From Caecitellus pseudoparvulus (lineage: Eukaryota > Protista > Bigyra: Bicosoecida), in the NCBI GenBank assembly GCA_965644315.1, contig CBFFRQ010000069.1, forward strand, positions 62,001 to 126,000: 64,000 nt of DNA. The letters are read 5' to 3'. The notes below the pieces were generated by a model. That model was given only the letters and a program-made list of their open reading frames with translations. It searched no databases and was not told the origin of the DNA. Of the stretch, positions 903-35,823 are shown piece after piece (the first letter of the stretch is position 1; the number at the start of each line of letters is the position of its first letter). The position numbers and the translations under genes were made by a program.

Positions 903-3411
903 TCACTGTTCGGGGCAGTAATCGTAGTACCACAGGCTGGAGCCTGCCTCCTCAACAAAGGGACATTGGATGGACGTCGCGAAGTGTGACTGAAAGAAGT
1001 AAATCGCACAACCAACCATGGTGGCAAGAAAGGAGGCAGTCCACCCCGGCGGCCGCACCTCAAACGCCCGCAGCAACCGACTCGTCATCAAGTCCAAGTA
1101 GTGCACCACCCCATACCCCCACGGCATGCGCCCCTCTCGACCCGCCGCCTCCCACGCCGCCTTCGCCGTCAGCTGCTCCCACACAGCTGCATGCTCGTCC
1201 TGCAGCGCCGGGGCATGCGCCTGCCGCACCCGCGCAGCATACGCCGCATCCAGCCGGGGACAGCAGGGGTGGCACATGACACAGGTGTCCTGGGGTGCCA
1301 CATCACACCCGCCGCCCCGCACAGTGGGAGCTGGTGTGCCGCCGTGCACGCTCACCTGCCGTGCGGGGGATGCAGCGGGCGCCATCAGCACCATGGCGGG
1401 CGTGTGCGGTGTCGCTGCCGTGGGGGAGGCGGCGTCGGCCAGGTCCAGCGAGCGCGGGGTGCCGCTGCCGCCGCCCTGCTCCTCGTCCCCCGGCGGCCGA
1501 GGCGACGGCGTGCCGGGCATGGACATGCTGGGCACATCCGCTCCCAGGCTGCAGTCGCCCTTGCCTGCGCCGTCCCCGCTGTCGTCCAGCAGGGCGACGG
1601 GTGTGGCTGCGGTGAGGGCCTTGCCTGGCAGGTGCAGGCGGCGGGTGTGGTAGGCCAGCGTGGCCTCGGTGTCGATGGGGGTGTACCCCACCGCCTCGCC
1701 CCACCACCAGCGTGCCGCAGCGTAGGCCAGGAAGGGCGCCACGTCTGTGCCCAGCTCCAGCACCAGCTGCACGGCGACGCGCCCGGTGATGTCGGTGAGG
1801 GTGAGAGGGGCGCCACCTGGCGTGGCGGGGATGCGGAAGAACGCCACCGTCGGGATCATCATGAGCACCGCCACATCCTCACACATGGTGTCCAGGTGCA
1901 GGAAGTGGTAGTGGGCTCGTGTGCGCCGGCGCTGCCGCCACCTGCGCTCCTGTGCCGTCGCGCCGGGGTGGCTGCACAGCCGGCACCGCCGGGGCAGGCG
2001 GGCACACGCGGCTGAGTACATGGCGTCCCGGGCTGGCATGGTGAAGCGCATGAGCATCTCCACAGCAGCGATGGCGAGGGAGAGGCCGATGGTGACGTAG
2101 ATGGAGTCGACGGCGGTGGTGAAGAAGCGGCCGAGGATGGCGGAGAAGGCGGCGGAGGGCAGCATGAAGAGGACCATGAGCTGTGAGGGGACTTCATGGG
2201 CGAGGGAGGAGCGGGCGAGCCAGCGCAGGACAGCCTGGATGGCTTCTGTGTGAAGTGGTAGGATGCCGAGGCGAAGGAACACCCGCATCCATGTGCCACT
2301 GGAGCTGAAGAGCGGCAGGTATAATGACAAGATGACGAAGATGTTCACGAAAATGATCATCAGGTACGTCAGCGACATCCTTATCGGCTTCTTTGCAAGG
2401 GTGAAGGCAATGGATCGGAGGTGCATGGGCCACCCGACAGTGACAACCACCTGTGAGTGAGGGACAGGCAAAGCGGTGCTGCATGCTACAGGGAAGCGAT
2501 GCAGAGGGGGTACATACCAGTCCAAGGATAGAGACGAGGACGTAAAGGAGTTGGAATTCGCGCTCCATATCGGCTGGAGTGCGCGTGGCCAGGCTGAAGT
2601 ATGGCAGGGACACTAAGAACAACACTGAGAAGGCCAGCCCCAGCATGGCGAGCACACTCCCTCGGTGTGGAAGTTGCCATCCTGCAATGGCTACCCACGT
2701 TCCACCAGCAATGCAAAAGCTGGACAGCGCTGATGCCAGGCACTGCGTCGAGAGCTGCACCCAAAACAGCGGACTCTGTGAGGGGCGTCGGCGAGAGAGC
2801 GGGAGCGGTTCCAAGGCAAGGCCTATGCGTAGTTCTATGCTAAACACCATGGGACATTGAGCACAGGTTGGCGGATGCCTAAGCCTGGCTTGGCGAGCTT
2901 GCCGCGCAAGGAGCACCTGCGCCACTCACGCTTTCAGGAGGCGACTCTGGCGCTGAGAGTGCGAAGAGCCCAGTTGGCTGGAAAGTGGAGTTGGGAGAGC
3001 CTCTGACAAAAGGGATGACCAGGTTGAGAGAGGAGCGCCCTGCGGGGGCGGCGCGGTCCTGGCCCGTGCTGCAGCGGAATGCAAGCTGCGGCCTCAGCGA
3101 AGCCTTGGTCCAATCGACGCCAGGCCGGGCTGACAGGCGACTCACGGGCCTCGTTGAAGATGTAGTTGGACAGGTAAAACCTTCCCAGGGCAACGACAGT
3201 GACAAGCAGCGCTGTTGACAGCGTCAAGAGCTTCATGGAGCCGGCATGACGGCTGGGCGGTGTGGAAAGGTGCAGTGCAGCAGGGCTGCGAAGGCTTGGC
3301 ACTCCTTCGCACCACTCACAGCGCACTAGCAAAGGCCTGCACGGGCGTCAGTGCAACAGTATGACGAACATGCCTTCCTGCAGGTGTGGGACTATCACCA
3401 TTGCGAGCCAT
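903..3411 (-). CDS. Uncharacterised multi-pass membrane protein, paralogue A of a three-member family; predicted exons 3411-3320, 3252-3146, 3068-2930, 2839-2518, 2450-903
   Basis: ORFs 903..2525, 2194..2925, 2934..3332 and 3316..3603 join in frame through GT-AG introns (3253-3319, 3069-3145, 2840-2929, 2451-2517). The product has many hydrophobic segments and ends QCPFVEEAGSSLWYYDYCPEQ, a motif shared with the genes at 28707 and 32196. The 5' exons are less certain. Confidence 0.75.
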
Positions 3412-4200
3412 CGTGCCGCCTGCCAAGGGTGGGGGGAAACAGCAACCAGCTGCCGCTGCGCCGGCTGCTCGGCTGGGGCGGGATGCTCGTTCGAACCTTG
3501 CCGCTGGGGCCAGGGAGACAAGGCAGAGGGGAAAACGCGAGCTCAGGAACTGGTGACACGCGAAATAAGCTTGCTGCCGCAGGGTCGGCTTCACTGAAGA
3601 CACACTGTGCGAAGCGGTACGTTGCAGTTTTAGCGGCTTGTGCGGGCTGTGGTCTGATCGGGGGGGGGTGGTGTGAGGGCTCGGAAGGAGGGCAAAGGGA
3701 GGCTGAAACTTGTGGCGCGGGAAAGCAGGACGTCCTTGGAGCGTATGCCTGGGTTGCTCACTCGTTCCGCTTCAAGCCTCTGCCATGGTGGGTCGTCGGA
3801 GGTGACTGCGGGTGCTGGCACACCATGCGCCAGCGCGGCCGTTGTCCAAAACGCCGCCGCAACAGCAGCAGACGGTACAGGTATGGTCCACTGGGGAGTC
3901 AGAGACGCAAACCCCGGAGCTGCTCAATGGCCACCAGAGAGACCCTGCAATGCTGTCCTTGCAGAACGCGGATCGATAAAGCCTTATGTCAAGGGTAAAT
4001 GCCCAGACTTCTGGCGCTGTTCACCGACTTGTATGCCGGCCGAGTCGGTGCTTTGCCTCGCGCTACAGGCGGAGCCAGCTTCGCCAATGGTGGCTGCACC
4101 TGAAAGTCTTCACCCTCCTTGAACGTGGGCCTTCACTATCGTGCCTTGCTGTGTGATGCGTTTCATGTATCCCTGCGTTGTCATTCAGTAGGCGGCACGG

Positions 4201-5130: not shown

Positions 5131-5533
5131 TGCTTTATGTAGCGCCTTGCCGCCTGTTTTAGGCCGAGGAGAGGCGTCGTGAGGCCCCGAATGTGTCGGT
5201 GTTTCACACCACTTCCTTTTGCGTTTCGTGCCTGATGACCGGCGGCGGTGGAGACACACAATAGGATAGCCACGAGGCTGAAAGTGCACCCCGTGTCTTG
5301 AAACTCAGACGGAGGATGCATGCAAGCTGCTTCAAGTTGTGTGCGGGCTCGGGATTTGGAGGAGTGGCGTGGCCTCCCCCCTGCTTGACTTCCTCCGCAG
5401 CGGAAACTCCGAGGCGGGCTGCCCAGGCTGCAAAAAGCCGCCAGCCCCCCAGGCACTGCACCGCGCACATGGATTTCATACATTCTTGCACGCTTCGGGT
5501 GCTTGCCAAGGCGTGCAGGCGCCCCATCTCAGC

Positions 5534-7507
5534 ATGGTGCAAGCTCTCCGGTGCCTGCTGCGGTTGGCGTTTCTCGCTGGGCTGTCCCTCACGACACACA
5601 GCACTTTGCTGGCAAGTTCAACCATAGAGCAGTGCGTTCGGACGGGCGTTGGTGCTGACGCTTGCGAGCGCCGCCTGCTGGCCACGCTGTCGGTGCAGAA
5701 TGCCCAGGAGTTGGTGGAGGGTGTAGAGACAATCAACATCGTGGCAGCTACCGACGCAAGTGGAGAGGTGCACTCTGTTCAAGACGGACTCCAAGTGTGG
5801 CTGGCCAAGAGCTCCATCTCCCTCCAGTACCCGCTGACCTACGTGCGGGACTTCAACAACAAGCCAAAGGAGGTGATCGTCCTGCGGAACTCTGGCGGCG
5901 CGGCCTTCAATGCTCTACTCAACCCTTGCCAGGACGACCCAGGCGAAGATGTAGCCTGCGGATGGGTCCGGAACAGTGCAGGTGATGCGATTCCCAACTC
6001 GCAAGGGTTCTGCTGCCGCTGTGACTTGGAGGCCATGCTGGGCTTCTACGGGACACAGGCGCGCTCTGCCGGGCACGGCGTTGAGTGCAGCATTTGGAAC
6101 TCCCAGTCTCAGACCGCCCATTGCCTGCGCATGGACGAACTGTGGTACTCAGCCTTCACAGTGGGCGCCCCGAGAGTGCAGTATGACCTGGATGTCGTCG
6201 TCAAGCACTGCCCAGCTGGTGCCCGCGGCTCGAGCGAGCCTGTCATCGTGGACCCGACGAATCTCCCCCCGGAAGATGACGTGGCGCTTCCCAACAGCGC
6301 CTACGAACAACCGCAGTGCAGCATGCAGGTGATCCGACTTGGTCCGAATCGCCCGACGGCGTGTGCGACCGTTCCCTGGTCGACACCCAACATGACCTCT
6401 GGTGCTTGCGATGTAGAGGTGTCCATCGAGGGCGACTTCGCCCCCTGGGAAGGCACACACAGCTTTCAGCACCAGTACTTGGTTGTGCCGTCTGTCTGTG
6501 ACGATGTCAGCAAGTGTGGCGCGCGGCTTGCAGATGCCCCTGGAAAGTGGATGCTGGTGGACAAGTCCAGGTTTACCCTGGACGGCAGCACGTGCAACAA
6601 GATCGGTGTGAGCTACACAGCATTTCGAAGTCAAGGGCAGCGGTGTGACGTTCCAGTGCAGTCCTGTCTAGGTGGGCAGCTGCATGACTTGTACGCCTTG
6701 GATCAGGCGGCGCTGGAAGCTGGCGAGACAGGCGCATACTTTGCTCGCTTTCAGCCCGCAGGCACACTGACCCAAACGCGGGACACGACGCAGCTTGTGT
6801 ACAGGACTGATCGCTACCAGCGAACGGTGGTGGCTCTGAACCTCAACGCAGATGGCCTGACGCTCATTCGCAATGTGTCACCCGGGCGCCTGCTTGCGGC
6901 GAACGTAACGGACTTCACTGCATTCAGTGGAAACGGCCGCCTTCGCGTCGTGGCGCAGAACCTTGGCGTGGTTCTGTCTCCCTTCACTGTCAGTGTGTCC
7001 TGCTCGAGATTCATCGCCGAAGTTCCCAGCAAGCAAGTCACACTGCCCGTGTCCACAAGCAGCGTCGCCGAGGCCGAAGCGGGGGGCAATCCCCTCGACT
7101 TGCTGACCTTCGCCCTTGAAGCCACAAGGCGAGGGCAAGGACAGCACTGGTGCCGCGTTTCACTGCAAGACGCACTTCAGCGGGAAGTGGATACCCGCAG
7201 TGTCAACTTCACGACCTTTGCCGTGGAAGTCGATCGGGGCTCGCAGGGGGGCGAAGCGGAGGAGGGTGCCCCGGATGCCAGTGACACGGCGGTCGCCCAA
7301 GGGTCCTCGGCGTCCTGCGAAAGCAAGTGCTCCGAGTGGTATGATATGCCGTGTGCAGTCTTGCAGGGTTGCTGGGAGCGCGTGCTGCACGGGCTTCTGG
7401 GTATTCTTGGGGTTGTCCTGCTGGGCAGTGCCATCTGGCGCGCTGTGCGCTGTGCATCCGCCGCTTCCCAGGCGCCCGCGCCGCCGCCACCCAAAGCGGC
7501 CCACTAA
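5534..7507 (+). CDS. HAP2: HAP2/GCS1 gamete membrane fusogen (class II fusexin), 657 aa, intronless
   Basis: Signal peptide MVQALRCLLRLAFLAGLSL, then LLASSTIEQC, NSQGFCCRC, TAHCLRMDELWYSAF, LDGSTCNKIGVSYTAFRSQGQRC..SCLGGQL (HAP2-GCS1 domain), a Cys-rich juxtamembrane segment and a single C-terminal TM helix. Confidence 0.95.
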   Translation: MVQALRCLLRLAFLAGLSLTTHSTLLASSTIEQCVRTGVGADACERRLLATLSVQNAQELVEGVETINIVAATDASGEVHSVQDGLQVWLAKSSISLQYPLTYVRDFNNKPKEVIVLRNSGGAAFNALLNPCQDDPGEDVACGWVRNSAGDAIPNSQGFCCRCDLEAMLGFYGTQARSAGHGVECSIWNSQSQTAHCLRMDELWYSAFTVGAPRVQYDLDVVVKHCPAGARGSSEPVIVDPTNLPPEDDVALPNSAYEQPQCSMQVIRLGPNRPTACATVPWSTPNMTSGACDVEVSIEGDFAPWEGTHSFQHQYLVVPSVCDDVSKCGARLADAPGKWMLVDKSRFTLDGSTCNKIGVSYTAFRSQGQRCDVPVQSCLGGQLHDLYALDQAALEAGETGAYFARFQPAGTLTQTRDTTQLVYRTDRYQRTVVALNLNADGLTLIRNVSPGRLLAANVTDFTAFSGNGRLRVVAQNLGVVLSPFTVSVSCSRFIAEVPSKQVTLPVSTSSVAEAEAGGNPLDLLTFALEATRRGQGQHWCRVSLQDALQREVDTRSVNFTTFAVEVDRGSQGGEAEEGAPDASDTAVAQGSSASCESKCSEWYDMPCAVLQGCWERVLHGLLGILGVVLLGSAIWRAVRCASAASQAPAPPPPKAAH

Positions 7508-7943: not shown

Positions 7944-10459
<2,516 letters not shown>

Positions 10460-13328: not shown

Positions 13329-13811
13329 GGCGAGCCTGGCGTCAAGCACCAATGCCAGCACGCGGAAAGGGTGCTGTGACACCTTGTCGTCGCATGTCGG
13401 GGGCCTGTGGGCTTTGCGGGTCGGTGGGCACTGTCCGCCTGGCTCTGCCCCGCCGCGCCGAAGCAGCAGTGCCTGCTTGGAGACAGAAATCAGCTCCCTG
13501 AGCCCTGTCGATGCACGCAGGCAGCTGCACCGATCGGCTGTATGCGGCGAGCTTGCCCCAGCAGCCCTCAGTCTCCCGTTGAGGCCCAGGCTGCTGCGGA
13601 GCGGGTTGTGCCACAGGCCGCCCACGCACAGCGGGCAGGCCACTGAGTGCCGCCAGTGCAGGGTTCCCATTGGTCTTGCGCTGCAGAGCCCGCTCATCCA
13701 CAGCGCAATTACACGCACTCAGTCAGTGGCGCTCCAGTACCTCCAGTCGCTTCCCCGGGAAGGCGTTGCAGCAGGCCCGGCGAGGTCGTGAGTGCGGAAA
13801 TTGCTTGCAGC

Positions 13812-16800
13812 ATGCCGTCTCGGCGGCGCCCCAGCCGGCGCAGTGTGGGGGAGGACGTCTTGGAGCAGCAGCAGCAAGAGCAGTTGTTGCAGCAGCAGGC
13901 CCTGTGGCTGGCCTCTCAAGACCTGCCCCCCCATGTGCAGGCTGGCAGCACTGCCTTCGGGCAGTACCCCTCCAGCCCGCCAGAGCCAACACCGAGGTCA
14001 GTGGCGGCGGCGGGCAGCCTTACCACTGCGCCGCCCACCCAGGCTTCTGCCTGGGGCGTGGGCCCGTACGGCACATCACATGGTAGCTCTCTGGTGTCCT
14101 TGCCTGACCCGACAGGCGCCTTCCGCAGCAGCTTAGGTGGGGGCAGTGGTCCAAGCTACGGAGGAGGGGAGGGGGTGGAGGGGGGGGGTGCCACCCCCCT
14201 CCCCGTGTACGACGTGTCCCTGTCCGCCACCTGTGTGCGGGACCTGGCCCAGGCGGCCCAGGTACGGCAGGCGGTGCGGGGACGCCCCATCCACTACCCC
14301 TTGCAGGGGGGGGCCGGGTCCGGTGCGCTGGTGACAGGGGGTCGCCCCGTCCCCCCCACCAACGGCATCCACTGCATCGCCAGCGGGGCAGAGGACCCCG
14401 CAGCAGTGGACATCATGCCAGTCGTGCGTCTGGGGCTGGTGCGTGTGGTGGGTGGGCGCCCTGTGCAGTGGGCAACTGCACTCAGCGCACTCCCGACAGC
14501 ACCCCGCCTGGTGCCGGCAGGGGAGCCGTCAGGGGTGGAGGAGGGGGAGGGGGGGGCTCCACTCCCCACGCCCACGGCACAGCAGCTGGCCCTGGAAGAT
14601 GCCGATGGCCACGCTCCAGTGCTGTGTCTGCTCGGCAGTCCGGTGGATGAGGGGGGGGTCGCCACCCTGGACCCCGGCGCAGCGGATGAGGGGGGGCGCG
14701 TCACCTTCACCTGGACGGGCGCGTCCACACACCTGCTGCTGGGGGCTGGCGGCTGCCCCTCCCCCGCCATGCAGGGCGCCGACACGCAGCTGCTGTTCGT
14801 AGTGCAGGTGCTGGCGCTAGGCCGGGGGGGGGCGGAGGCCATCGGCACTGCCTACCTGCCTGCGGTGGCTGTGGCGGCGGCGCCTCAGGGCAGACTGGCG
14901 CAGTGGCTGCCCTTGTGGCTGCCTGGATCCGGACCCAAGGCCCTCTCGCCAAGTGCCTGCCGCCGCCCCCCCCAGTGTTCCGGGTGGGTGCACGTGGCAG
15001 CGTCGGCCGCTCTGGCCATGTTGCCCACACCCCCCCCCACCGCCTTGGCCCCCCACCCCGATGTCGTGGCCCTCACTGTGGCGGTAGCGCAGGTGACGGA
15101 GGGGGGCGAGGGGCAGCGTGTGCTAGACTTGGTGCGTGCGGTGGAAGAGGGGGGGGGGGACGGCTCCCCCGGTGGCCACCCCCCCCACACCCCCTCGCCT
15201 CGCCGCCGCCCCCGCTCCGCCACCACGCGCACCACCCGCCCCCGTGGTATGCGGGCGCCCGTGGATGCCATAGGGCACGATGCAGCGGCCGTGCTGCCGT
15301 ACTTGTCAGGCAGCCCCACGCCCCACCGGACCTCGCGCCGGGCAGCGGCGGTGTACGCCAGCGAACTGCACGGGACACTGCCGCCGCCTCGTGGGCGGTC
15401 CACGGCCTCCCCACGGCGCCCAGCATCGGCAGCCACCCGACGCAGTGGGCGAAGGAGCAGTGGGGGCGGCAGCGCACATGGCGCCACCCACGCTGCCCCC
15501 CGCCTGCGGGAAGGGCCGTTGCGGAAACAGGCCAGTGACCTGCGGCAAACCCTGGCCCGCCTGCGCAGTCAGCTGACACGGGAGCGCACACAGTGCCGCC
15601 GGTTGAAACAACAGGTGTCCACGGCTCGACGACGGGCAGAGGCATCGGCGCTGGCTCTTGCGCCGCCGGGAGGGAAGCCCGGCTCGGCGTCTGCGACCCG
15701 CCGACGGCGCAAGGTGTCGCTGGTCGGCAACACGGTGCTGCCGCCGCCCAGCCCCCGCTCTGCCCAAGCAGCGTCCTTGCTGGCCATGGGCCAGGTGGAT
15801 GAGGCGTCTGTGGTGACTGGCAACTTGGCGCTGGGGCTGGGCGTGCCGCGGCATGTCGTCGGTGCGGCGTTTGGCGGCCCGGCAACCCTCAGCGGCTTGC
15901 CCCACGTCAGTCGCGCTGGAGTGCCACTGGGGCTGGTGGGGGGCCCAGCAGCCCTGCATGCTCGCCTGGCTACGCTGCGGGCGCGGGCTCAGGACAGCCA
16001 CCGGCGCCTGAGCCACCTCATGCTGACCAAGGCGCGTGCAGCGGCAGGTCGCGCTGCGAGCCACGCGGCAAGTCGGGCAACCGTGCTGAAGGCGCTCACC
16101 ACAGTGCATGCGCTGGCAGTGGGGGCGCAGCGTGAAGCGTGGATGCTGGCGGGGCGTGGGCAGGAGGCTGCCTACGCGCCAGTGCTGGACATTCTCGAGG
16201 CGCAGTTTGGCGTGTTCGTGCGGCACTGGCGGCCACTGCGAGACGACGACGACCCGCCCACCTGGCTCGTGCAGGCGGAGGCGGCGGCGGTGCAGAACAC
16301 GGGGGCCACTGCCACACAGCTGTCCCCCCATGCGACACGGGTGCTGTACGTTCCCGCCTTTTGCCGTGCTGCGGAGGCGGCGTTTCCTGGACTGCTGCGG
16401 GACGTTTCTGCGCAGCTGCGGCGGGGCCTGTCGCCCCAGCGGCAACTGCGCCTGGATGGGCTGGCAGACGAGGCGGCGCAGGTGGCGGCGGCACACCAAG
16501 ACGCCGTCATGCAGAAGCAAGTGCTGAGCAAACGCCTGGAGCGGCGGGGCATGGCCGCCCAATCCTCCCTAGCACAGGCGAAGCATCGCTTGGCCCAGGC
16601 GCGTGCTGAGCTGCGTGCAGGGCAGAGTCAGCTGACGGCTGCGTTGCAGGGGGGGCAAGGCATCGCGGAACAAGTGACTCGCTCCATCGACGTCAGCATG
16701 GTGCAGCTGGGGGTGGAGGCGGGCGCGGCGGCTGCTGAGCCGTCAGCGAACTTGACGGACCCCCATGCGTGGTCACGCTCTGCGGCCGCGGCACTGGCGG

Positions 16801-16904
16801 CCTTGCGAGCTGAGATCGCGGGCTTACGCGAAGCTCTTCGAAGGCATCGCAGCCGCACCCACGACGCCCGGCTGGCAGGCACTCTGCTGCGTGGACCAGC
16901 GTGA
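13812..16904 (+). CDS. Uncharacterised 1030-aa protein with a degenerate C2-like segment and C-terminal coiled coils
   Basis: Long uninterrupted ORF. LLFVVQVL...IGTAYLP...QWLPL resembles a C2 domain C-terminus; heptad-rich segments such as LRKQASDLRQTLARLRSQL and LAALRAEIAGLREALRR. Confidence 0.7.
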   Translation: MPSRRRPSRRSVGEDVLEQQQQEQLLQQQALWLASQDLPPHVQAGSTAFGQYPSSPPEPTPRSVAAAGSLTTAPPTQASAWGVGPYGTSHGSSLVSLPDPTGAFRSSLGGGSGPSYGGGEGVEGGGATPLPVYDVSLSATCVRDLAQAAQVRQAVRGRPIHYPLQGGAGSGALVTGGRPVPPTNGIHCIASGAEDPAAVDIMPVVRLGLVRVVGGRPVQWATALSALPTAPRLVPAGEPSGVEEGEGGAPLPTPTAQQLALEDADGHAPVLCLLGSPVDEGGVATLDPGAADEGGRVTFTWTGASTHLLLGAGGCPSPAMQGADTQLLFVVQVLALGRGGAEAIGTAYLPAVAVAAAPQGRLAQWLPLWLPGSGPKALSPSACRRPPQCSGWVHVAASAALAMLPTPPPTALAPHPDVVALTVAVAQVTEGGEGQRVLDLVRAVEEGGGDGSPGGHPPHTPSPRRRPRSATTRTTRPRGMRAPVDAIGHDAAAVLPYLSGSPTPHRTSRRAAAVYASELHGTLPPPRGRSTASPRRPASAATRRSGRRSSGGGSAHGATHAAPRLREGPLRKQASDLRQTLARLRSQLTRERTQCRRLKQQVSTARRRAEASALALAPPGGKPGSASATRRRRKVSLVGNTVLPPPSPRSAQAASLLAMGQVDEASVVTGNLALGLGVPRHVVGAAFGGPATLSGLPHVSRAGVPLGLVGGPAALHARLATLRARAQDSHRRLSHLMLTKARAAAGRAASHAASRATVLKALTTVHALAVGAQREAWMLAGRGQEAAYAPVLDILEAQFGVFVRHWRPLRDDDDPPTWLVQAEAAAVQNTGATATQLSPHATRVLYVPAFCRAAEAAFPGLLRDVSAQLRRGLSPQRQLRLDGLADEAAQVAAAHQDAVMQKQVLSKRLERRGMAAQSSLAQAKHRLAQARAELRAGQSQLTAALQGGQGIAEQVTRSIDVSMVQLGVEAGAAAAEPSANLTDPHAWSRSAAAALAALRAEIAGLREALRRHRSRTHDARLAGTLLRGPA

Positions 16905-24909: not shown

Positions 24910-26148
24910 TCAGGCGTGTTGCAGCGCGTACTTCACAGCCTCGTACGTGCCCCAGCTGATGGCCATGGCAGGCGTGTGCAGTGCCACACGCGCCCCCAGA
25001 CCCCGGAAGAACCCTGCCAGCCCCTCCTCTGCGTGCAGCTTGCGGGCGACGTCCAGGACGCCTGCGTACCGCGGCCCCTGGGGGGGGCGGGTGGAGGGGG
25101 GGGCGCAGGCGCAGTCTGCCGCACCCCCCCCTGGGACCCCCTTGTCGGGCTTGGTGTAGTACTGGGCAACTTGCAGGCCAGGTGCCCCCTGCCCGCCACT
25201 GCCCAGGAGGGAGGAAGAGGTGGCTGCCAGGCGCCTGGCAGCGGAGCGCAGGGTGGAGGAGGTGGTGGAGGAGGGGGGTGCGGGGGGGGGCACTGGCACG
25301 GACTCTGCGTGCACAGCACACGCTTCCAGCGCCTGTGCCGAGCACTGCTGGGTCTGCAGGCGTGTCTTGATGACGTCCAGGGGCGTGGTGGCGCAGGCAG
25401 CCACTGCGCCCGACACAGCGCCCGAGGTGAGGTACACACCCATGTCGTGCTGGCCGCCAGGGTTCAGCACCTCCTTCATGCTCTCGTTGGTGGCCACCAC
25501 GACACTGGCGTAGGGGATGTTCATGACCAGGGTGGTGGGGAAGGCCCGCCACAGCGCAGACAGGCCCTCGCTGCGCGTGACGGAGGTGAGGCAGTCCCAC
25601 ACGCCTGAGTAGTACCCCAGCTGCAGGCGCTGCTTCACCAGGTCCATGGGCGTGATGATGGCGTCATGCATGACGGTGGCGCACGCGCCAGCGGCAGCGG
25701 CGCCCACCACGTGGTGCCCAGGGGAGTTCACGCCAAAGGCGTCCTTGGCCACCTCGTACACGGTGAAGTACGCCGTGTGGGAGGGAATGCACGCTGTGAG
25801 CATGGCAGGCGCGCCCCGCCACAGTCGCGCAAAGCCATGCTGCTTCAGCAATGCCGCGAAGGAAGGCGGGTTGCTGGACTTGGCAGAGGTTTGCAGGAAT
25901 GTCTGTGGGGTGGGCGTGGCAGCCGTGTGGGCGTCACCGCTGCGCGGCCAGTTCCATGCGGAGTTTCATGCCCGCGTTTCGCGTGTTTTGCGCTGCGCAC
26001 ACCTCACCTTGTACGTGTCCAAAGGGAACATGGCCACGTGCTCCATCACGCCAGCTGCACTCCCTGCAATCATGTGGTGCACAAAACTGCCCTTGCTGGG
26101 GTCCCACTCCTCCCAGTCCTCGTCAATCATCGGCATGTGGTCCGCCAT
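24910..26148 (-). CDS. Mitochondrial iron carrier (mitoferrin, SLC25A28/37, Mrs3/4 family); intron 25903-26007
   Basis: HMIAGSAAGVMEHVAMFPLDTYK, ACIPSHTAYF..YE, HDAIITPMDLVKQRLQ, PTTLVMNIPY, TPLDVIKTRLQ, AISWGTYE. Confidence 0.92.
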
Positions 26149-26612
26149 GCTGGGCTGCAGCTCAGTGACGCCAGCTATGCGAACACGGCCCGCCCGCCAA
26201 ACGGGGCCTGCGCGAACGGTGGCAGGGTAGTGGGCAGTGCTAAATGGGAAGTGTGGGTGACCAACTGCTTATGGTCGGGCAGCCTCGCGCGTCACGTGGG
26301 ATTTGCCGGGCCCGCCCCGAGTCTGCGGGAAAGGAAGCGCCTGTGCAGTGCCGAGTGCTGGGCAGCTGAGGCCGGCGACGCAGCAAGGGCGCACGCCACC
26401 CAAAGCCAGACACCCCGACAGCCCCCGCACCGGAGTTCCCAGCGCCTCACACACACCTTTGCCAGCTTGGCAAGCTTTGCTGCAGTGGGGCTTGCGCTGG
26501 GCTGTGTCTGCCGCTCACGGCACCGGCTGCAGGCTGCCACTTGCACTGCACACCACTCACACCAGGACAGCTGCTCCGGGTCCCCGCCCGAGAACTGGCC
26601 GCGCTCAGCAAC

Positions 26613-27956
26613 ATGGAAACTCGCAGTGCTACACCCCCTGCGGTTCCAGATGACGCCGAGGCGCCGCCTGCCGCGCAGCACGCCGCTGCTGAAGCTGTGG
26701 TTGGCAGCGGCGAGGAGGAGGACGTTACGGCACATGATATCGGCAGCCTTGATCAGGACGCTGTGGTGGCTGCACTGCTGGCGCAGGACACTGAGGCTGC
26801 TGCTGCTGCAACAGAAGGTGCAGATGAGGGCTCCATTTCCGCGCAGGCCGTCCTGGACGCGCTGCAGCACGCGGCGCCTGATGCGGATTTAGACCTGCAC
26901 CTCCGGAAGGCTGCCCAGCTTGCAGGGGACCCTGTCGAGCTCGTGTCGTTGCTCCTGGACATGGGCGCCGATCCAGATGCGAATGATGACAATGGGCTCA
27001 CCGCACTGCACTTTGCTGCCAGAGAAGGCAACAGCGGCGCCGCCGCCATCCTCCTCGCCGCAGGCGCAGACGCCTTGGCGGCTGTCGGCGAGGCACACTT
27101 CACACCGCTTCACAGGGCGGCAGCAGGCGGCCACGCACGCATTGCCGCTGCCCTCCTGGCTGCAGGCGCAGACGCCAACGCTGGCCAGGGCATCGGCACG
27201 CCTCTCTTCGCGGCACTCTCCCAAGCAGGCACCGTGGCGCCTGGCAACGTCGTGCTGGTGCTGGAGGTGTTGCTGAGAGCTGGCGCAGTGGTGGACGTGC
27301 CTGCCGCCCAAGCCGCCCTGGAGGCCTCCACCGCCTCCTTAGCTGCCCTGCAGCAAGCCGCACAGACGACCAGGTGGCCGGGGGACCTCGCAGTGCGCCC
27401 CTCCCCTCAGCACCAGGTCGCAGACGGCGAGGCGGCGGATGCGTGTGCCCAGGCAGCCCGGCTGCTGCAGCAGCTGCATCCAGTGGCAGGTGCTAGCGAT
27501 GCATCTGACACTGAAGGTGCCGGCACTGAGGTGCAGCCAGTCTCCCCCCTGCTACAGGGCACTGGCACTGGCACTGGCACTGGCACTGGCACTGGCACTG
27601 GCACTGGCACTGGCACGGGCACGGGCACGGGCACGGGCACTGGCACTGGCACGGGCATTTCCCCCGCTGGAGGGCTGGCATCCCCATCGCCACCCCCCCT
27701 CATGGCACACCAAGACACGGCTGTTGAAGACGAGACCCATCACACGAGTGAGGGGGCAGGCGAGGAGTCACGTGCAGCACCAGTGGAGCAGGCGCCCGCC
27801 CCCGCACGACCACCAGTGGAGCAGGCGCCCGCCCCCGCACGACCACCAGTTGAGAGTGGCCCCACCATCGTCGCACCGCCAGGGGCGCCGCCTCTCGCCA
27901 AGTCTGACCCTGCGCCAGGCCCAAATGCGACAGGGTGCTGCTGCGTCGTGCAGTGA
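26613..27956 (+). CDS. Ankyrin-repeat protein with a Gly-Thr repeat and C-terminal CaaX (GCCCVVQ)
   Basis: GLTALHFAAREG, FTPLHRAAAGGH, GTPLFAAL ankyrin repeats; acidic N-terminus; terminal CVVQ. Confidence 0.85.
   Translation: METRSATPPAVPDDAEAPPAAQHAAAEAVVGSGEEEDVTAHDIGSLDQDAVVAALLAQDTEAAAAATEGADEGSISAQAVLDALQHAAPDADLDLHLRKAAQLAGDPVELVSLLLDMGADPDANDDNGLTALHFAAREGNSGAAAILLAAGADALAAVGEAHFTPLHRAAAGGHARIAAALLAAGADANAGQGIGTPLFAALSQAGTVAPGNVVLVLEVLLRAGAVVDVPAAQAALEASTASLAALQQAAQTTRWPGDLAVRPSPQHQVADGEAADACAQAARLLQQLHPVAGASDASDTEGAGTEVQPVSPLLQGTGTGTGTGTGTGTGTGTGTGTGTGTGTGTGTGISPAGGLASPSPPPLMAHQDTAVEDETHHTSEGAGEESRAAPVEQAPAPARPPVEQAPAPARPPVESGPTIVAPPGAPPLAKSDPAPGPNATGCCCVVQ
27558..27653 (+). repeat. 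Coding hexanucleotide microsatellite (GGCAC[T/G])x16 encoding (Gly-Thr)16
   Basis: Directly visible tandem repeat. Confidence 0.97.
27778..27850 (+). repeat. 33-bp coding tandem duplication (about 2.2 copies; PVEQAPAPARP)
   Basis: caccagtggagcaggcgcccgcccccgcacgac repeated. Confidence 0.92.
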
Positions 27957-27959
27957 AGG

Positions 27960-28581
27960 CAGCCTCCCCAGGTGGACCTCCAACACCTGCCGCCACATTG
28001 CAGCGCGCTGAGTGGTTGCCTGTTCACCAAGACACTTTTGAAGTCGAACACCAGCACAGCGACTCCCACTCCTGGCGCTCAATCAGCCCGTGCAGGTCAG
28101 CTGCTGCTTGGAAAGTGTGTAGCGGTGCAAGCAGCATAGCTGGGCGGGTTACCGACCCGCTTGTCGTCCACGGTCGCCAGCGCTCCAGCTCTGCTGCCGA
28201 GTATCTCCAACAGGGAAGGCTGCGTTGCTCACTTGGGTTGGTACCATGGCAAGGGCACACCTGCAGTGGCGAGTTTCCGGGTCGCCCTCTTTCCTCAGCC
28301 CGCGCCGTCAGCAAGTCAAGGGCAAGCACGCGCAGGGCGCGAGGTGTCCGCCTGTGTGGCCGACTGAGAGCCGAGTGAATGGACTGACTTGAGGCCAGCT
28401 GACACACGATGTATGCATGCGGTCCTTTGCCCGTGTGCGGGACGCACGTTTGGCGAGGTGCCTGGCTTGTTTGTTCCTCGCGAGCCAGCCCGGCTTCAAT
28501 GCTCATCAGGCAACCCTCCGAGCAAGTGGCGCGGACAAAATTCACCTCCTTCACCACTTCCACGACTGGAATCTGCCCCAT
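27960..28581 (-). CDS. Possible small multi-exon hypothetical gene
   Basis: ATG 28581 (MGQIPVVEVVKEVNFVRATC...) followed by several GT donors (GTGCGT, GTGTGC) and CAG acceptors that can be joined in frame; no homology recognised and 3' end unclear. Confidence 0.22.
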
Positions 28582-28706
28582 AGGTTTTGAGGGCCCTGGT
28601 GCCCTGCAACACGGCACAGTTGAAGGCGACTGCGGCAACTCCTGCGCACCATCCCCAGCGCTCCTGAACCTCTCTACAGCAGGCCAAGGCAAGGAGGTGG
28701 AAGCTC

Positions 28707-31700
28707 ATGAGTTGGCAGATCGTTGCACAGCGGCCCCCGCCGCTTCTGGCAGGAAATGCTCCTCGGAGTCTCCTGGCTGGCGCTGGGTGCGTGCGCGGCT
28801 TGGTGTGCACTCAGTCTTTTTCTGGTGCCCTCACCCCACTTGTACTGCATGTGCCACACAGACTGCGGTACGGTTCCACGATCGTCCTGGGCATTGCCAC
28901 GACTGTACTCTCCCTGCCTCTCATGTTGTGGATGACGGTGCACCTGTCCAGCGCGTGGGCGCTGCTTGGTACGTGAGGCGTTGGCAGCTGTCGCGGCGAC
29001 GGGGTGCGCTGTTGCGCGAGACTCCATGATGGACCGTGGCTTGCCTCCCCGGGCCTTGCTTCGATGGCCCAAGCATACCACTGTAGTAGGCATGCTTGCC
29101 TCTCCTCGGCACTGCATGGCGTAGTCCCCTGTGCCTGCGCCGCTTGCCAGTGTGCGGCACTTCCTCGCCCGGGATCCCTGCACAGAGAGTCCGTCCCAGC
29201 AGCTTCCACCGTGGAATGGAACACGCACGTACACGCAAGTGGCCACCTTGACCAAGCACGATCCTGATTGGGTGCGTCTTGGGGCCATGGAGTTCCCCTT
29301 GCGGCCGCTGCCGCGTGTGTCTGGGCATGCTCCAGGCGCCTGGCGCACCACCACCACCCCGCCTGCACAGATGAGTGCGACGTGGCGCTTTTCCGCCATC
29401 GATGCGACTGGGGTACTGCCAGCAATTCTGAGCACTGCTCTCGTGCCTTGGTGTGTGCTGGGGAACTTCGGCCTGTGCCGGTTTCGCCTGGCGGGGCTGC
29501 TGCCCGCAACGCCTCTCGCAGTTGCTGCGATCACGGCTGCGTTCGCCGGCATGACTTCCGTGTCCTGGCCCTGGTCCGGCACGCCACGCTCCCTCATCAT
29601 GCCCATGGCTTTGTTTAGCACGGTCTTCCTCATCAGCGGCGCGCTGTGCCTGCCGCGGCTCATCTCCCGCGCTCAAGACCTGCGGCCCACGGCTCTGTCG
29701 CGGGCCGCTTCGCTGACAGTCACGGGCCTGACAGTTTCGTCTGCCGGCTTCGTGCTGGCGCTAGCGTGCAACATCTTCACGTGGCTCACCGCCAGAAACG
29801 GGCTTGTGGTTCGCTTCCTCGTGCGATTCTTGCTGTTTGCCGCCGTGGCAGAGCTGGCGGCTGTTGTGCAGCGCGCCGCAGTGCGAAGGTGGGTGCTGCC
29901 CCACGTTTCAGCCAGTTACTCCGTCGCATTCCTGGCGCCACTGTCGTTCGGTGCCGCGTTTGTGGGGCGCTTCATGGCCCTGAACGTGTCCTCCTTCCCC
30001 GAGTGCATCGCTATGGGTACCCTCGTGACGCTGACGTCAGTCGTGGCTCGTGCCTCAGCTCGCCAGCGCGATGCGTGGGTGGGCTGGGCGGTGTGTGGCA
30101 GGTCGCGCCAGGCGGGTGCTGGCCTGCAACCCGGGCTCATGGCTCTCACCCAGCCCCAGCAAGCAGCCCATGACCGGGCCTTTTACGCCGGCTTGGCTGT
30201 CGTCGGCGAGGCGAGCGAGCTGCTGGGCATCCTCGCAAACGCCGCAGCCATCCCGCTGCTGCGCATGCCGCCCTCCACCGGTGCGGAGATCCTGTCCATC
30301 CCAGACGTCATGGCTCGAGCTGGGGTCCACCTAGCGATTGAAGCTGGTGTCATGGTCTTGCCTGCCCTCCTGCTGTGGGCAAGCCCACTCCTGTTCGTGT
30401 GGGCTGCTGACGCGCACGTGAACGGTGTGTACCAACAGTCCCTCCTGCCGAAGCCACGCCCTGCCGACCTTGCTGGGCACAGCAGCACAGGGGCCCCTTC
30501 GCCACAGCAGTCCACATCCCCTCCTAGATTCGTCACGGAACTGCCTGTGCTGGCCGAGCTGGCCCACGGGGACAGCTCCTCCTCACTGTCCCTACAGGGC
30601 TGGTCGGGGGGCATGCGACGCCCCAGCGCCGACGAGGCAGAACAGGCAGCAGTGGGCAGCACCTTGCACTCCATGCCTGCTCGGGCTTCCCCTGCCCTGC
30701 TCTTGGAAGCCACTGCACCCGTGGCGCTGCGCAGTGCCACCCCGCCTGACGAGCAAGTGGTCAGCGAGCGAGTGCCGCCGACATTGATCGTCGCGAAGGG
30801 GCGGCGAGAGGAGGGCGTCGACTACGACCAGCAGTGTGGCCCCACCCTCAGCGGTGATTCCCTGTGCTCTGCGGGCCGTTGCTCCCCTGTGCCCCTCGCT
30901 GTGGGGCAGGAGGGCGGCCGCATCCCCTCCGACGGACCCGCCAGCTGTGGCAGCTTCATGTGTGTGCACCTGCCTATCGGGGGCGGGTGGGCAGGCCCCA
31001 CGTCACCCAAGCCCCACGCCCACATCGTGCCCACCATTCGTCTGGACAACCTGCCCGCGAGCGGTGGCTCGCAAGTGGAAGGTGCCCTGCCGGCGCCTCG
31101 TGCCGCTGTGGGGCCTGGGCCTCTCGTGCGCTCCCGAGGGGGGGGCGTGTGGGATGCATCCCGCGACGTGTCTGAAGATGGCAGTGTGGGCCCACCAGTC
31201 CGCATGGCGGAAGCGCGGGGCATCAGCGGCGTCACGGCCAGCCCCCTAGGCGTGCAGATCTCGTATACGCGCAGTGCCAGCACGGGATTGCACCGGCCCA
31301 CCTCAGGGGGAACACCGCAGTACGGCTCCGCTCGCAGCGCAGGGCCAGTCCGCCTGGGCCACCTCACTCCTAGCATGGCCTCAGGCAGCAACTTCAGCCT
31401 GTCCACCCTCGAGAAGGGTGGCAACTCGGCGCTGTGCGGCGGACCAGCCTGCTGCGAGGCGCCCTCGAAAACGCCCCACCCCTGCCACGGCTCCGCCTGT
31501 GGCCAGTTCTGCCGGCGGGCGATGTCTCTGACATGGGGCTGTTGTGCTGTGTCTGAGGATGACACGCCCCTCCTGCGGGCGCACGCCGAGGCGGTGCAAG
31601 CGCTCATGCTGCACAGCACCACTGTGCACCAAGCAGTCTGGCAGCCCATGCACACGAGTCGGTGGCTGGAGCTGCAAGCCGCAGCACCCCAGCTCGTGGG

Positions 31701-32064
31701 CGGGTCGGTTGGCGGCACCAGCACACATCCACCTGGCCACTGCTCAAGCTCCACTTCAGTGCCCACGTTCATCGACGACGCGCCAGGCAGCTCCCGCCCC
31801 GCACAACGCAGGCCAGTCCGGCCTCGCCAATTCCCCCTGTCGCGCCACGCTCTACTGCTGGTGGAGGTGTGGCTGGCACGCACCACAGCTGCTTGGCAAG
31901 CGCTGCCCCGGGTGCTGTTCCTGGGCTTGCTGGTGCTGGTACCCTGCATCACCTCCTTTGCTGCGTTTCAAGTGGTGCACCCCTGTCGCAAGTGCCCCTT
32001 CCTGCCCCCCGCCCAAATCGGGCAGCCCGACGCTGCCTACGTGTATGACTCGTGCAGTTGGTAG
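28707..32064 (+). CDS. Uncharacterised multi-pass membrane protein, paralogue B; introns 28787-28861 and 28969 to about 29185 (acceptor uncertain)
   Basis: 977-aa ORF plus 5' exons; many hydrophobic segments, long disordered loop with a Cys cluster, ends KCPFLPP...YVYDSCSW. Confidence 0.78.
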
Positions 32065-32195
32065 TCCGACTGCCCGGGATGGGCCGCCGTAATGTATTCT
32101 TTCCGTGCGCAGACCCTGCCAGCGCACAGCGCCCTGGCCGCTCTCTCACCCCGACGGCCAGGAAGAAGCTCGGCCAGCGCCAGCTTCTCAGCTTG

Positions 32196-35100
32196 ATGCG
32201 TCCCATCCCCCTGCTCGCAGCAAAACACGGCCAGCGGCCAGCAGACACCCACACTCCGCCACGCAAGACCTACCTTCACCTGCTGCCCTTTCACATCACG
32301 CTAGCGCAGCCCGGGCCGGGCGTTGCGCACTTTTCCAGGCTTGGTCAGCCCGCGTTGGCTCCCGAAGCGGGCTGGTGACGGGCCGAGACAGCCCCCCACT
32401 CTGCACACCGCTGCGTGGGCAGCGCGTGCTTCCGTGCCCTATAGGTGGGCCCTTTATCCCTTGCACAGCATGCAGCCAGCGGTGCGCGTCGGAGACTCCA
32501 CCATTGCGTTGCTGCAGCGCGCAAGGTGCGGCGCAGTTGTCGTGGCTTGAGCGGGCTTGTGCGCCCTGCCCATTGCACGCCCTGCTCCACCCCCTCCCCT
32601 GACGCAGTGCACGCTTCTTTGATCTGTTCAAGCTTGCCCTCGGTGCATTGCTGGTGTCCTTCCCAGTCCTCGTCTGGTACAACGCGCTGTTCGTGGCGTA
32701 CTGGCGTGAAGTGGGTGCGTTTCTGCCCCCGTCGCAGCGATGCCAGCGGCCAGCTTCTGCCAGCGCCTCTCAACAGTTGCCGAACAAGCTGGGCAAGCTG
32801 CGGTCGCGAAGGGCGTTCCCAACCATGACTGCTTGATGCCTTCTGAGCCCCCCGCCCACGTGCTGCCTCCGCCAGCGGCCTCGCACCAGCCGCCCCTGCG
32901 CCTGGCACAGATGGACTGGCGCTGGCCAACGTCTCTGCCAATGGCACCACCAGCGTGCCCATGTCCCTCACCACTGTGCGGCAGTGGTACCTGAACGTGA
33001 GTGCCCACCAGCACTGCACACCACCCCCGCCACCTCCCCACCCCACCGCCGCCCTCACACGCGCAGCCCATCAGCCTGCATGTGGGCTGCCTCACCCTCT
33101 TCATGTTCTGCTTTGGCTACCTCTGCTTCCTCCTCGTGCCCCTCCTGCTAGCTGTGCGCTGTCGCCTGCTGCGCTTCAGGGCCTGTGGCCTGGCCAGTCT
33201 CCTGCTGCCGGCCAGTGCGCTGGTGGGGTGGGTCACCATGGTTGGGTGGGGGACGGCGGTCACCCGCTTTGGCTCCCTCAGCCAGCAGCAGGCCTTCCTG
33301 CAAGGCACCGTCTTCGTGAAGCCCTTCCTCTTCCTGGCGTCAGGAGCGCCCCTGCTGTGGTGGGCGCTGAAGGTGCTGGGCCGCGAGCTGCCTGACGGCT
33401 TCCACCGCCCTGGGCAGGTCGCCCTCACTGTGCTGTTCACCACCATCTTGGCAGCTGCGGCAGGGCCTGCCTTCCTCCTGAGCATCTTCGTCAAGGCTCC
33501 TGCCTGGCAACGCCTGCTGCTGCGCTGCTTCGCCTTCCCACTGCTGGTGGGGGTGGGGCAGGCTGCTCTGCGAGCGTCGCTGTGGTGGGGCGGCGGGCTG
33601 GCCTTGCCGCCTTCACTGGCAGTGCAGTTCACTCTGCCGCTGCGCCTGGCCGCGGCCATGCTGGGGTGCCTCGTCATGGTGAACCTGCCGACGCTGGAGG
33701 AGACGCTGTGCATGGTGCTGGGCGTGGCCGCTGTGTCGGCGGGCTGTCGCTGGACGCTGGCAACCAGACACCACGCAGAGCACAGGCTGTGGCAGGCGCT
33801 GTGTCCTCGCAAACCCCCGTCAGCGGAGCAGGAGGGGGCGCACCAAGGCATCCCTGCCGCTCCCCCACTGCCTGCCGCCCAAGCTGCCCGCCGCTGGCAC
33901 ACCCACTTCATGTACAGCGCGATGGGGGGCGACGCCGCCTGTGATGCTGCTGGGTCACTCATGGCTGTGGCGCTGGTGGCGTTGAACTCCATGCCGCCCG
34001 TGCCTGGCAGCCAGCCGCTGGAGCCTGGGCAGGTCTTTGCGCGCCTGGCTCTCCTGCTGGTGGGGCAGGTGTTGGTGCAGTACATGCCGCTGGCGCTGGT
34101 GCTGGTGGGGCGGGGGTGTGTTGGCGCGGGGCAGAGCCCACCCCCCACACCCTTCGCGGAGGTCTGCTTGCCCGCACAGGGCAAACACCACCCTGCGACC
34201 CCACGCACGTGGGGCGGTGTGGCAGGGGGTGCCTCCAAATCACTTGCCCAGCACTTGCCTGCGCTGAGCCTGGACGACGCAAAGGACTTGCCCCCCGCCT
34301 TCCCCCCCCCTTCACACCCCTCCCCCCTGGCTGAGATGAAGCTGGGTGATGTTCCCTCCCTCGGGCGGGAAGCTAGTATTGTGCCGGGGCACCCCCCCTC
34401 CTCCTCGGGCCGACGGGGGCTCTTCGCTTCCGGCCGCAGCGCCGCAAGCGAAGGCAGCGACGGCAGCGAGGGCGCCGCCTGGGCAGCAGAAACGCACGTG
34501 TGGTTCAGCCAGCCGACTGTGGGCCGCATCGCGCTGGGGGATGAGGGGGAGAGCAGTGCGGCGGAGGGGTGCGTGAGCGACGCCAGCTGTGCGCGCCTGC
34601 AGCCGGTGTCGCTGGCGACAGGGTCGCAAGTGGGCGGGTCGCACAGCGACGTGGCGCACCCAGTGAACTCGTCGACACGGTCCCTGTTCACCATCCAAGA
34701 GTCGGAAGTGGAGTCATCCCAGGAGTCGGTGCGATCTTGGGTGGGCCCAGGCTCCGGGGTGGTGGGCCCGCCCGCCACCGCAAGGCACCTCCCCCCCCGA
34801 CCCCTCGCCCGCACGGCAGTCAGACAGCCTCCCCCCGACAGCGCACACCCCCTCATGGTGGTGGAGGTGCACCGCGACCTGTCCCTGCGCCGCACAGCAG
34901 CCCCCCTCCCCATCACCCTGCCGCTGTCCGGCCGAGGGGGGGGGCAGGAAGAGGGGGACCCCCCCCCCTCCGCCCTTGACGCCAGCCCCCTGGCCAAGAG
35001 CCACCGCGCCCCCTCCAGCCGTTCCCCCTCCCACAACCCCAAGTGTGGGAGCAGTGCACACAGCCGCGTGTACAGTGCACGCAGCGCCCGAGGGTCGTCC

Positions 35101-35823
35101 CACACACCCCCCGTGACCCTGGCCCACGAGGGGGGGTCGGACACGGTTGACCCCCCTCCACCCCTCATGCACCCCCCCCTCATGGACTCCATCACCATCG
35201 CATGCACGGGTCCCCCCTGCTGCCAGCGCCCTGGGCCAGACGCCGACCACGCCTGCCACGCCTGCGCCTGTGGGGTGCTGTGCCAGCGCTCCATGGCGCT
35301 CACGTGGGGGTGGTGTGCCACGCCAGGTGACGTGGAGGAGGCTGCCCCGGTGCCGTGCCTGGAGGCGCACTATGCCCCCCTCGTGCAGCAGGGCTGGGGC
35401 GCTGCCTGGGACGAGATGTGTGTGGCCGACACGCCCTCCCCACCGCCTTCCCCGACGGGCTCCTGTGAGAACCCTCAGGCATCGTCCCAGGGGAGCTACG
35501 GTGGAGGTGGGGGTGGAGGGGACATCGTGGACGACTCATGCGCTGTTGGACGGCAGCCTAGTCACGCGTGCCAGGGCGCGTCTGGCTGGGCTGCCATGCC
35601 CCGCCTCCTGCGCCTGGAGGTGGCTCTGGCCCGCGTGGACCTGGCCTGGGAGGGCCGGCCAGCTGGCTTCGCGCTCGCCTTCATCCTCACGGCCCTGGCG
35701 CTGCAGCTGGTGTTCACGTACTACGCCATGCGCCCGACAGTGCGCTGCCCCTTTTTCTTCCAGCAGCCAGCAGCGGGGCTGGAAGGCCGCGTCTTCTTCG
35801 ACCTCTGCGTCGCGCAGGGCTGA
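32196..35823 (+). CDS. Uncharacterised multi-pass membrane protein, paralogue C (tandem with B); 5' exon structure approximate
   Basis: 940-aa ORF 33001..35823 plus upstream exons (e.g. 32608-32714 RFFDLFKLALGALLVSFPVLVWYNALF); Cys cluster CHACACGVLCQRSMALTWGWC; ends RCPFFF...VFFDLCVAQG. Confidence 0.75.

Follow-up and report, generated by a model that had tools for sequence, protein, structure and literature searches.

Ca2+-activated currents, lipid scrambling, hearing, and osmosensing depend on proteins of the TMEM16, TMC, and OSCA/TMEM63 families. TMEM16 proteins (anoctamins) act as Ca2+-activated channels and lipid scramblases, and OSCA/TMEM63 proteins as mechano- and osmosensitive channels. 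In TMEM16 proteins the Ca2+ site consists of acidic residues of the sixth, seventh, and eighth transmembrane helices (TM6, TM7, and TM8), and in OSCA proteins the N-terminus lies outside. All seven families of the anoctamin superfamily carry Anoctamin, TMC, or RSN1_7TM Pfam models, and the superfamily is reported to lack an internal repeat (PMC5868767). Here we describe three genes, termed A, B, and C, from a stretch of 64,000 nucleotides of the protist Caecitellus pseudoparvulus (contig 69, positions 62001-126000; hereafter the window, numbered from its first letter). The source genome comprises 30.6 Mb in 215 contigs and has a guanine plus cytosine (GC) content of ~65%. Judged by their sequences, A, B, and C belong to an unnamed eukaryotic family of predicted 11-helix integral membrane proteins that numbers 23 paralogs in this genome. 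Their long open reading frames (ORFs) are as follows.

903-2525, minus strand: long ORF of gene A, 540 codons
29131-32064, plus strand: long ORF of gene B, 977 codons
33001-35823, plus strand: long ORF of gene C, 940 codons

Searches with A, B, and C used single, unjoined exons, and structure prediction accordingly treated the core apart from the first hydrophobic helix (TM0) of the proteins of the window. In BLASTP comparisons A matched B at 3e-10 and C at 7e-16. The direct comparison of B with C over the TM part was non-significant (0.31), and the C-terminal part of C matched B at 3.6e-9 in a six-frame search. Homology between B and C is accordingly transitive, because their direct TM match is non-significant but all three proteins match the family profiles. 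Profile A1, built from 21 paralog cores, scored 2e-102 with A, 7.7e-82 with C, and 7.4e-74 with B. Profile A3, built from 48 members that are all proteins of other organisms, scored 3.5e-37 with A, 1.3e-17 with B, and 2.3e-15 with C, and reached no locus beyond the 23. Six-frame searches with A, B, and C, jackhmmer on the retrieved frames, and the profiles A1 and A3 all agree on these 23 loci, which are spread over at least 13 contigs; the two profiles are independent of each other and return an identical set from the 30.6-Mb genome. The family is real: a profile made from foreign proteins alone recovers the same 23 loci.

The original prediction had presented A, B, and C as homologous members of an unrecognized, expanded, and fast-evolving family of three. 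Homology is upheld by the pairwise and profile alignments, which are significant, and expansion by the 23 loci that the hidden Markov model (HMM) searches of the genome recover, A, B, and C included; the count of three does not hold. Nor has any characterized family given a confident match. Fast evolution applies to B and C. In a maximum-likelihood tree their branches are the longest by far, with 2.6 substitutions per site versus a median of 0.66, and both proteins are without several near-invariant residues; the grouping of B with C in that tree is not robust. Elsewhere in the genome, contig 56 holds a cluster of three family members inside 20 kb (469122-489249), the third of which (488104-489249) has an in-frame TAG and two open frames, and may be a pseudogene or intron-bearing.

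Relatives of the family are found well beyond this genome. When 1.84 billion cluster representatives were searched exhaustively with a profile, 283 relatives passed the cut-off of E<=0.001. The near tier contains ~40 proteins below 1e-30, of which about half are 95-99% identical to paralogs of this genome; the rest are 25-56% identical and presumably come from related species. A second tier, from 1e-21 to 1e-7, consists of proteins of 400-1100 residues in which the TM core is the same, the N-terminus is long and disordered, and the last loop is usually short. An NCBI eukaryotic assembly is the source of one of these relatives, and Logan, ENA, and JGI contigs are the source of others. One word-index protein search gave a single family match, the 657-residue metagenome protein P0001, and a second such search gave three already known relatives and nothing more. 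There were no informative names among the relatives. No Pfam-A family matched A, B, or C at E<=1, and across 58 relatives (ten distant ones plus the 48 members of A3) Pfam-A gave no family at E<=1 and nothing recurrent. With no relative in the PDB by sequence or by Foldseek either, the family is indeed an unrecognized one, as first supposed.

The predicted proteins share one architecture. The layout noted originally, with roughly ten hydrophobic segments followed by a long loop and a final TM, is borne out by both hydropathy and AlphaFold. An additional helix, TM0, is encoded in an upstream exon. The order of elements is TM0, a short loop bearing sequons, TM1-TM9, a disordered loop, three cytosolic helices, TM10, and a beta-hairpin with two terminal Cys. 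AlphaFold models were obtained for the main exon of a compact paralog on contig 18 (541 residues, predicted local distance difference test score (pLDDT) 85.4, predicted template-modeling score (pTM) 0.85) and for the distant relative P0064 (421 residues, pLDDT 87.8, pTM 0.88). A, B, C, many paralogs, and P0064 have sequons of the form N-x-S/T in the loop that links TM0 to TM1. Since these sequons are placed outside, we infer that the N-terminus lies in the cytosol together with the long loop, that TM0 runs outward, and that the sequon loop and the C-terminal hairpin are outside. The two terminal Cys probably close the outer beta-hairpin as a disulfide, consistent with an outside location. A homodimer prediction for two copies of P0064 scored 0.00, which counts neither for nor against a dimer.

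Motifs and conservation were read from two family alignments, one of 21 sequences and one of 87 that includes both tiers of relatives. The aligned blocks that A, B, and C had been noted to share all recur in both as family-wide motifs. These motifs are R..hR....P...E in TM5; GRF in TM6, which is lost in C; FR.P...GG.PL....RV..Q...E..TD across TM8-TM9; W(E/Q)P; R...AW..R ahead of the last TM; and, terminally, C...D..G...(Y/F)D.C. The last three, together with the last TM, make up a C-terminal module that is present in A, B, C, and all full-length paralogs; its HMM matched 38 near relatives and gave weak matches to five distant ones. Eleven residues are conserved in at least 90% of the 87 sequences: R144, E153, and R160 (TM5); G191 and R192 (TM6); R219, R225, and D226 (TM7 and its cytosolic extension); E287 (TM8); and Q324 and E328 (TM9). 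Most of the 11 fall inside predicted helices. Near-invariant polar patterns are R/E/R in TM5, G-R in TM6, E...R.....R-D in TM7, D-T-x-x-E-D in TM8, and R-V-x-x-Q-x-x-x-E-x-x-T-D in TM9, so that near-invariant charged and polar residues are predicted inside the bilayer on TM5-TM9.

Our leading interpretation of function, offered tentatively and at distinctly less than even confidence, is that each protein works as an ion channel or as a conduit of the lipid-scramblase type. Under this interpretation, consecutive helices would contribute buried acidic and basic residues to the lining of a predicted polar path; ions or lipids would be conducted along that path, as in TMEM16, TMC, and OSCA; and the variable cytosolic loop would give each paralog its own regulation or sorting. 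The same residues could alternatively be the catalytic or binding site of a membrane enzyme, such as a lipid-modifying enzyme or an intramembrane hydrolase, or the protein could have a structural or organizing role. The invariant R-D pair and the conserved Glu at the cytosolic membrane boundary are in keeping with this alternative, as is a weak match of the distant-relative profile A3 to presenilin-1 (E 3.8e-4). We nevertheless consider it quite improbable. The near-invariant columns contain no G-x-G-D and no conserved His or Ser, the presenilin match covers hydrophobic helices only, and prenyl synthases are soluble helical bundles.

A presenilin or GxGD protease, a nine-helix fold with its Y-D and G-x-G-D catalytic motifs on neighboring helices, was considered as a candidate in its own right. 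The A3 match was judged compositional; it was not seen with profiles A1 or A2 or in any fold search, and no Y-D or G-x-G-D motif was found among the conserved columns.

The comparison with TMEM16, TMC, and OSCA, from which the channel or scramblase interpretation takes its lead, begins with the predicted structures. For the genome's own member the structural comparison gave Z scores of 7.0 with TMEM63A, 6.8 with TMEM16A, 6.6 with TMC-1, and 6.4 with TMC-2, a range that is uninformative for helical proteins. The scores for P0064 fall in an equally uninformative range, at 7.9 with TMEM16A, 7.4 with TMEM16F, 7.2 with TMC-2, 7.1 with TMEM16K, and 6.8 with TMC-1, and the alignments cover 216-235 residues. 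The models thus point, weakly, to TMEM16/TMC/OSCA as the closest solved membrane fold. Several features resemble TMEM16 (PF04547, clan CL0416): long tilted helices that reach into the cytosol, the lack of an internal repeat, and conserved acids on three consecutive helices (TM7-TM9 here) in the inner membrane half, a likeness that comes from sequence and predicted helices and not from superposition. OSCA/TMEM63 proteins have 11 helices, with an extra TM0 ahead of a ten-helix core, and 11 helices are predicted here too.

There are also differences. Unlike TMEM16, the family has no N-terminal cytosolic dimerization domain, its long loop precedes the last helix, and conserved Arg stand beside the acids. 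Unlike OSCA, it carries no cytosolic domain of the PHM7 type in the TM2-TM3 interval, and its N-terminus appears to be inside rather than outside, with a glycosylated loop after TM0. Unlike TMC-1 and TMC-2, it has no TMC motif. Sequence profiles searched against the PDB gave, apart from the weak presenilin-1 match, only hydrophobic-helix noise (the TM regions of GLIC, Orai, and the nicotinic receptor). No Anoctamin, TMC, or RSN1_7TM match at E<=1 was found in A, B, C, or the 58 relatives.

A further set of results weighs against a TMEM16-like conduit. Foldseek found no match in the PDB at E<=0.001 for either model, and the fold alignments that were obtained have root-mean-square deviations of 5.1-6.9 Å and cover only about half of each model. 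Pfam Anoctamin (PF04547) matched ~ten loci in the genome and Pfam RSN1_7TM (PF02714) at least 10, and none of these is among the 23. Comparison of profiles A2 and A3 by hhalign with the genome's own anoctamins and OSCA-like genes gave P values of 0.23-0.94, with target alignments of 5-7 sequences; the control comparison of anoctamin with OSCA gave 2.7e-4. The predicted proteins have 11 helices and an outside C-terminus, compared to 10 helices and both ends inside in TMEM16. Finally, the conserved residues include Arg and acids in equal number, and the charge cluster may be a salt-bridge network rather than an ion site. Since the sequence-level comparisons place no member in the TMEM16/TMC/OSCA superfamily, the family is not filed there, and the idea that it works like those proteins is kept as a weak leading hypothesis.

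Conserved charges in mid-membrane on several helices typify carriers no less than channels. In a secondary transporter, the buried network of Arg, Glu, Asp, and Gln would bind a small solute or ion and move it through alternating access; regulation or location would then differ among the paralogs. Clusters of PF28488 (SPCC553_12c) appear twice among the nearest language-model feature neighbors, at 0.88 for gene A and at 0.94 for P0064 (7/30 matches). These clusters consist of multi-pass proteins from eukaryotes that are similar in size (536-695 aa), and the namesake of this uncharacterized Pfam family, SPCC553.12c of S. pombe, is annotated as a 'transmembrane transporter (predicted)' (PMC5990653; PMC7218141). 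The annotation is itself a prediction, however, and the link to PF28488 is a similarity of language-model features only. In addition, hhalign of the profile halves found no internal repeat, direct or inverted, and a structure search of the ESM Atlas found nothing (template-modeling score at most 0.21). We regard a carrier as unlikely, though it ranks next after the conduit interpretation.

The disordered loop ahead of the last helix bears on another possibility, namely that the family is a repertoire of receptors or sensors in which each paralog would detect an external cue of its own and pass the signal on by way of its long cytosolic loop. The loop is ~100-450 residues long, rich in Ser, Pro, and Ala, variable between paralogs, and unalignable apart from a hydrophobic-hydrophobic-D-D motif and a Cys cluster. 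The motif, in full hydrophobic-hydrophobic-D-D-(A/S/T) and flanked by Pro, is kept in the loop of nearly every paralog and may be a sorting or binding motif; the loops that hold it in the window lie at about 1290-1682 (A), 30427-31515 (B), and 34141-35286 (C). Such a loop, with a short conserved motif and many Ser and Pro, could be a signaling platform, and the predicted glycosylation of an outer loop, the fast evolution of B and C, and the size of a lineage-expanded family with tandem copies and gene conversion would also suit receptors. The small size and the conservation of the outer surface nonetheless make a receptor less likely. No outer part is long, the longest of the outer loops (FR.P...GG.PL) ranks with the best-conserved regions of the protein, and variation between paralogs is concentrated in the cytosolic loop and not on a ligand-facing surface. 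The helix count is also wrong for a seven-helix receptor. Overall a receptor repertoire seems very improbable. The original prediction had named a receptor, channel, or transporter repertoire; the receptor is the least likely of the three, and the channel and transporter options stand, with the weak lead toward TMEM16/TMC/OSCA.

As a specific candidate, a 7TM receptor (G protein-coupled receptor (GPCR)-like) was rejected: the predicted proteins have 11 helices, not 7, and GPCR chains align over only 80-120 residues.

Taken at its widest, the conduit interpretation would make the family an undescribed, patchily pan-eukaryotic class of 11-helix conduits, either a very deep new branch of the TMEM16/TMC/OSCA fold, with a topology and an ion or lipid path of its own, or an independent fold; in the small genome of this marine flagellate the class would have radiated to 23 genes, every copy tuned by its particular disordered cytosolic loop. 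We consider this wider proposition possible but doubtful.

Exons of B and C were examined with contigs of three runs labelled metatranscriptomic, placed on 28400-34399 of the window; one of the runs is recorded as RNA and two are flagged 'RNA? (probably DNA)'. The features of B are as follows.

28707..28786, plus strand: gene B exon 1, with ATG at 28707; 80 nt
28862..28968, plus strand: gene B exon 2, encoding TM0 (a hydrophobic helix in translation); 107 nt
29186..32064, plus strand: gene B exon 3, encoding an N-G-T sequon, TM1-TM9, the loop, the cytosolic helices, TM10, and the Cys hairpin, and ending with the stop
~29365-30426, plus strand: TM1-TM9 of gene B, from the alignment
~30427-31515, plus strand: disordered loop of gene B, from the alignment
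31516-32061, plus strand: cytosolic helices, TM10, and Cys hairpin of gene B, from the alignment

The introns of B, 28787-28861 (75 bases) and 28969-29185 (217 bases), are both of the GT..AG type and are both spliced in an RNA-library contig of run X20, the segments of which lie at 28746-28785, 28861-28967, and 29185-29268. The exon model proposed originally, with its start at ATG 28707, is in frame and agrees with this contig. Gene C has the following features.

32604..32714, plus strand: gene C TM0 exon; contigs of runs X17 and X19 extend from 32604/32619 to 32713
32911..32996, plus strand: gene C short exon, encoding the outer loop with N-V-S and N-G-T sequons; GT..AG joints on both sides in two runs
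33067..35823, plus strand: gene C last exon, from the ORF and the profile match (7.7e-82), ending with the stop
33067-34140, plus strand: TM1-TM9 of gene C, from the alignment
34141-35286, plus strand: disordered loop of gene C, from the alignment
35287-35820, plus strand: C-terminal module of gene C, from the alignment

The exon model proposed for C stood in part: its introns 32715-32910 and 32997-33066, both GT..AG, are seen spliced in the contigs of runs X17 and X19. The TM0 exon has no ATG in frame after the stop at 32600-32602, which implies at least one further exon upstream. DNA-type contigs of a fourth run span the B/C stretch without intron gaps. The four GT..AG joints are present in the contigs of the three runs and absent from these DNA-type contigs; therefore, B and C are transcribed and spliced.

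On the strand opposite to C there is an open frame of 734 codons (33117-35321, minus strand), and similar frames lie opposite B. Such antisense frames commonly accompany GC-rich coding sequence and are not genes.

The features of gene A were read from the sequence.

903..2775, minus strand: gene A main exon, encoding TM1-TM10, the cytosolic loop, and the C-terminal Cys hairpin; stop at 903-905; from the ORF and the profile match (2e-102)
2488..2516, minus strand: frame break in gene A, with one surplus base or two missing bases compared to an intact frame
2930..3039, minus strand: gene A predicted exon 2, encoding the outer loop with an N-S-T sequon
3146..3236, minus strand: gene A predicted exon 1, with ATG at 3236, a hydrophobic TM0 (start M-K-L-L-T-L-S-T), and a GTGAGT donor at 3145

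The putative exon model of A is thus 3236-3146, 3039-2930, and 2775-903. Its main exon would follow the acceptor CACAG at 2780-2776. Predicted exon 2 is bordered by an acceptor CAG ending at 3040 and a GTGAGT donor from 2929, continues in frame into the main exon, and matches in layout the RNA-supported exon of gene C. The main exon is read in two frames, with TM4-TM10 in the ORF 903-2525 and TM1-TM3 in another frame at 2775-2490, and the predicted exons sum to 2074 nt, which is 1 modulo 3. In a DNA alignment with the neighboring paralog and a metagenome allele the frame break appears as a 2-base gap; it may reflect an error of assembly or a genuine frameshift.

A tandem twin of A adjoins the window upstream (contig 69, 58819-60375) and is 88% identical to A, with ~91-100% identity over the C-terminal 520 residues and only ~29% over TM1-TM3. 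Identity between A and the metagenome protein P0001 is 91% across residues 136-657; across residues 34-136, which correspond to A's other frame, it is 29.5%. P0001 and A's neighbor are 95.6% identical over the full length. P0001 is a mosaic, with a body like the neighbor and a C-terminal end like A. That the differences between the neighbor and P0001 are concentrated at the C-terminal end fits gene conversion between tandem copies, and the pattern looks like gene conversion within this pair. One member, the neighbor of A, is by sequence comparison under purifying selection: dN/dS, the ratio of nonsynonymous to synonymous substitution rates, is 0.16 over the TM core between the neighboring paralog and the metagenome allele.

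Changes within the three genes raise the alternative that B and C, and possibly A as well, are copies in decay or without function rather than working genes. A retains every near-invariant polar residue. B has lost the TM7 Glu, the TM9 Q, and the TM9 T-D; C has lost the TM6 (GRF) Arg, the TM7 Glu, the Asp of R-D, and the TM9 Q/E. These losses, the very long branches of B and C, the frame break in A, and the ratios of nonsynonymous to synonymous changes among the strain differences listed (10:4 in B and 5:4 in C) would all suit decay, although that list is a partial sample with 106 further differences outside it. However, the last-exon frames of B and C are uninterrupted over 959 and 918 codons, compared to approximately one stop per 50 codons in a random frame at this GC content, as estimated from composition. 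Both genes are transcribed and correctly spliced, and their overall architecture and C-terminal module are intact. The break in A is possibly an assembly error, because the flanking sequence reads as well-formed helices. Decay is on balance very unlikely. Rather, since B and C, the two most diverged copies, are without several near-invariant residues, their core activity may have been changed or lost.

Several other genes share the window. An intact gene for the HAP2/GCS1 gamete fusogen (Pfam PF10699, E 2.9e-109) lies at 5339-7507 on the plus strand, which implies that this protist is capable of sex. A Slo/BK-type Ca2+-activated K+ channel with Ion_trans, BK_channel_a, and RCK domains is encoded at 60057-63326 (plus strand) in one frame of 1,089 codons. 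A single frame of 3,823 codons, at 44680-56151 on the minus strand, encodes IPT/TIG repeats, G8 domains, a CEMIP beta-helix, and one C-terminal TM; the product is a fibrocystin/PKHD1-like giant surface protein. This TIG/G8 protein has no HMM match to the 11-helix family, a single TM, and no membrane module in common with it. In the 2,487-codon frame at 37131-44594 (plus strand) only a WD40 propeller was recognized, at approximately residues 960-1120. Frames of 1,085 codons (13647-16904) and 408 codons (25666-26892), both on the plus strand, had no Pfam match at 1e-5.

The analysis defines a family that lies outside the copy of Pfam-A searched and the PDB, with 283 clusters among 1.84 billion proteins, clear motifs, and a confident predicted structure, for which P0064, at 421 residues and with a confident model of its own, is a compact test object. 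If the conduit interpretation is true, the family would be either a relative of TMEM16/TMC/OSCA that is unrecognizable by sequence or an independent fold with a similar charge network, and in both cases it would widen the known range of conduits. For the organism, the family represents a 23-gene radiation with tandem copies and what looks like gene conversion, and in the annotation of its genome 23 genes pass from 'orphan ORF' to members of one family with a proposed topology.

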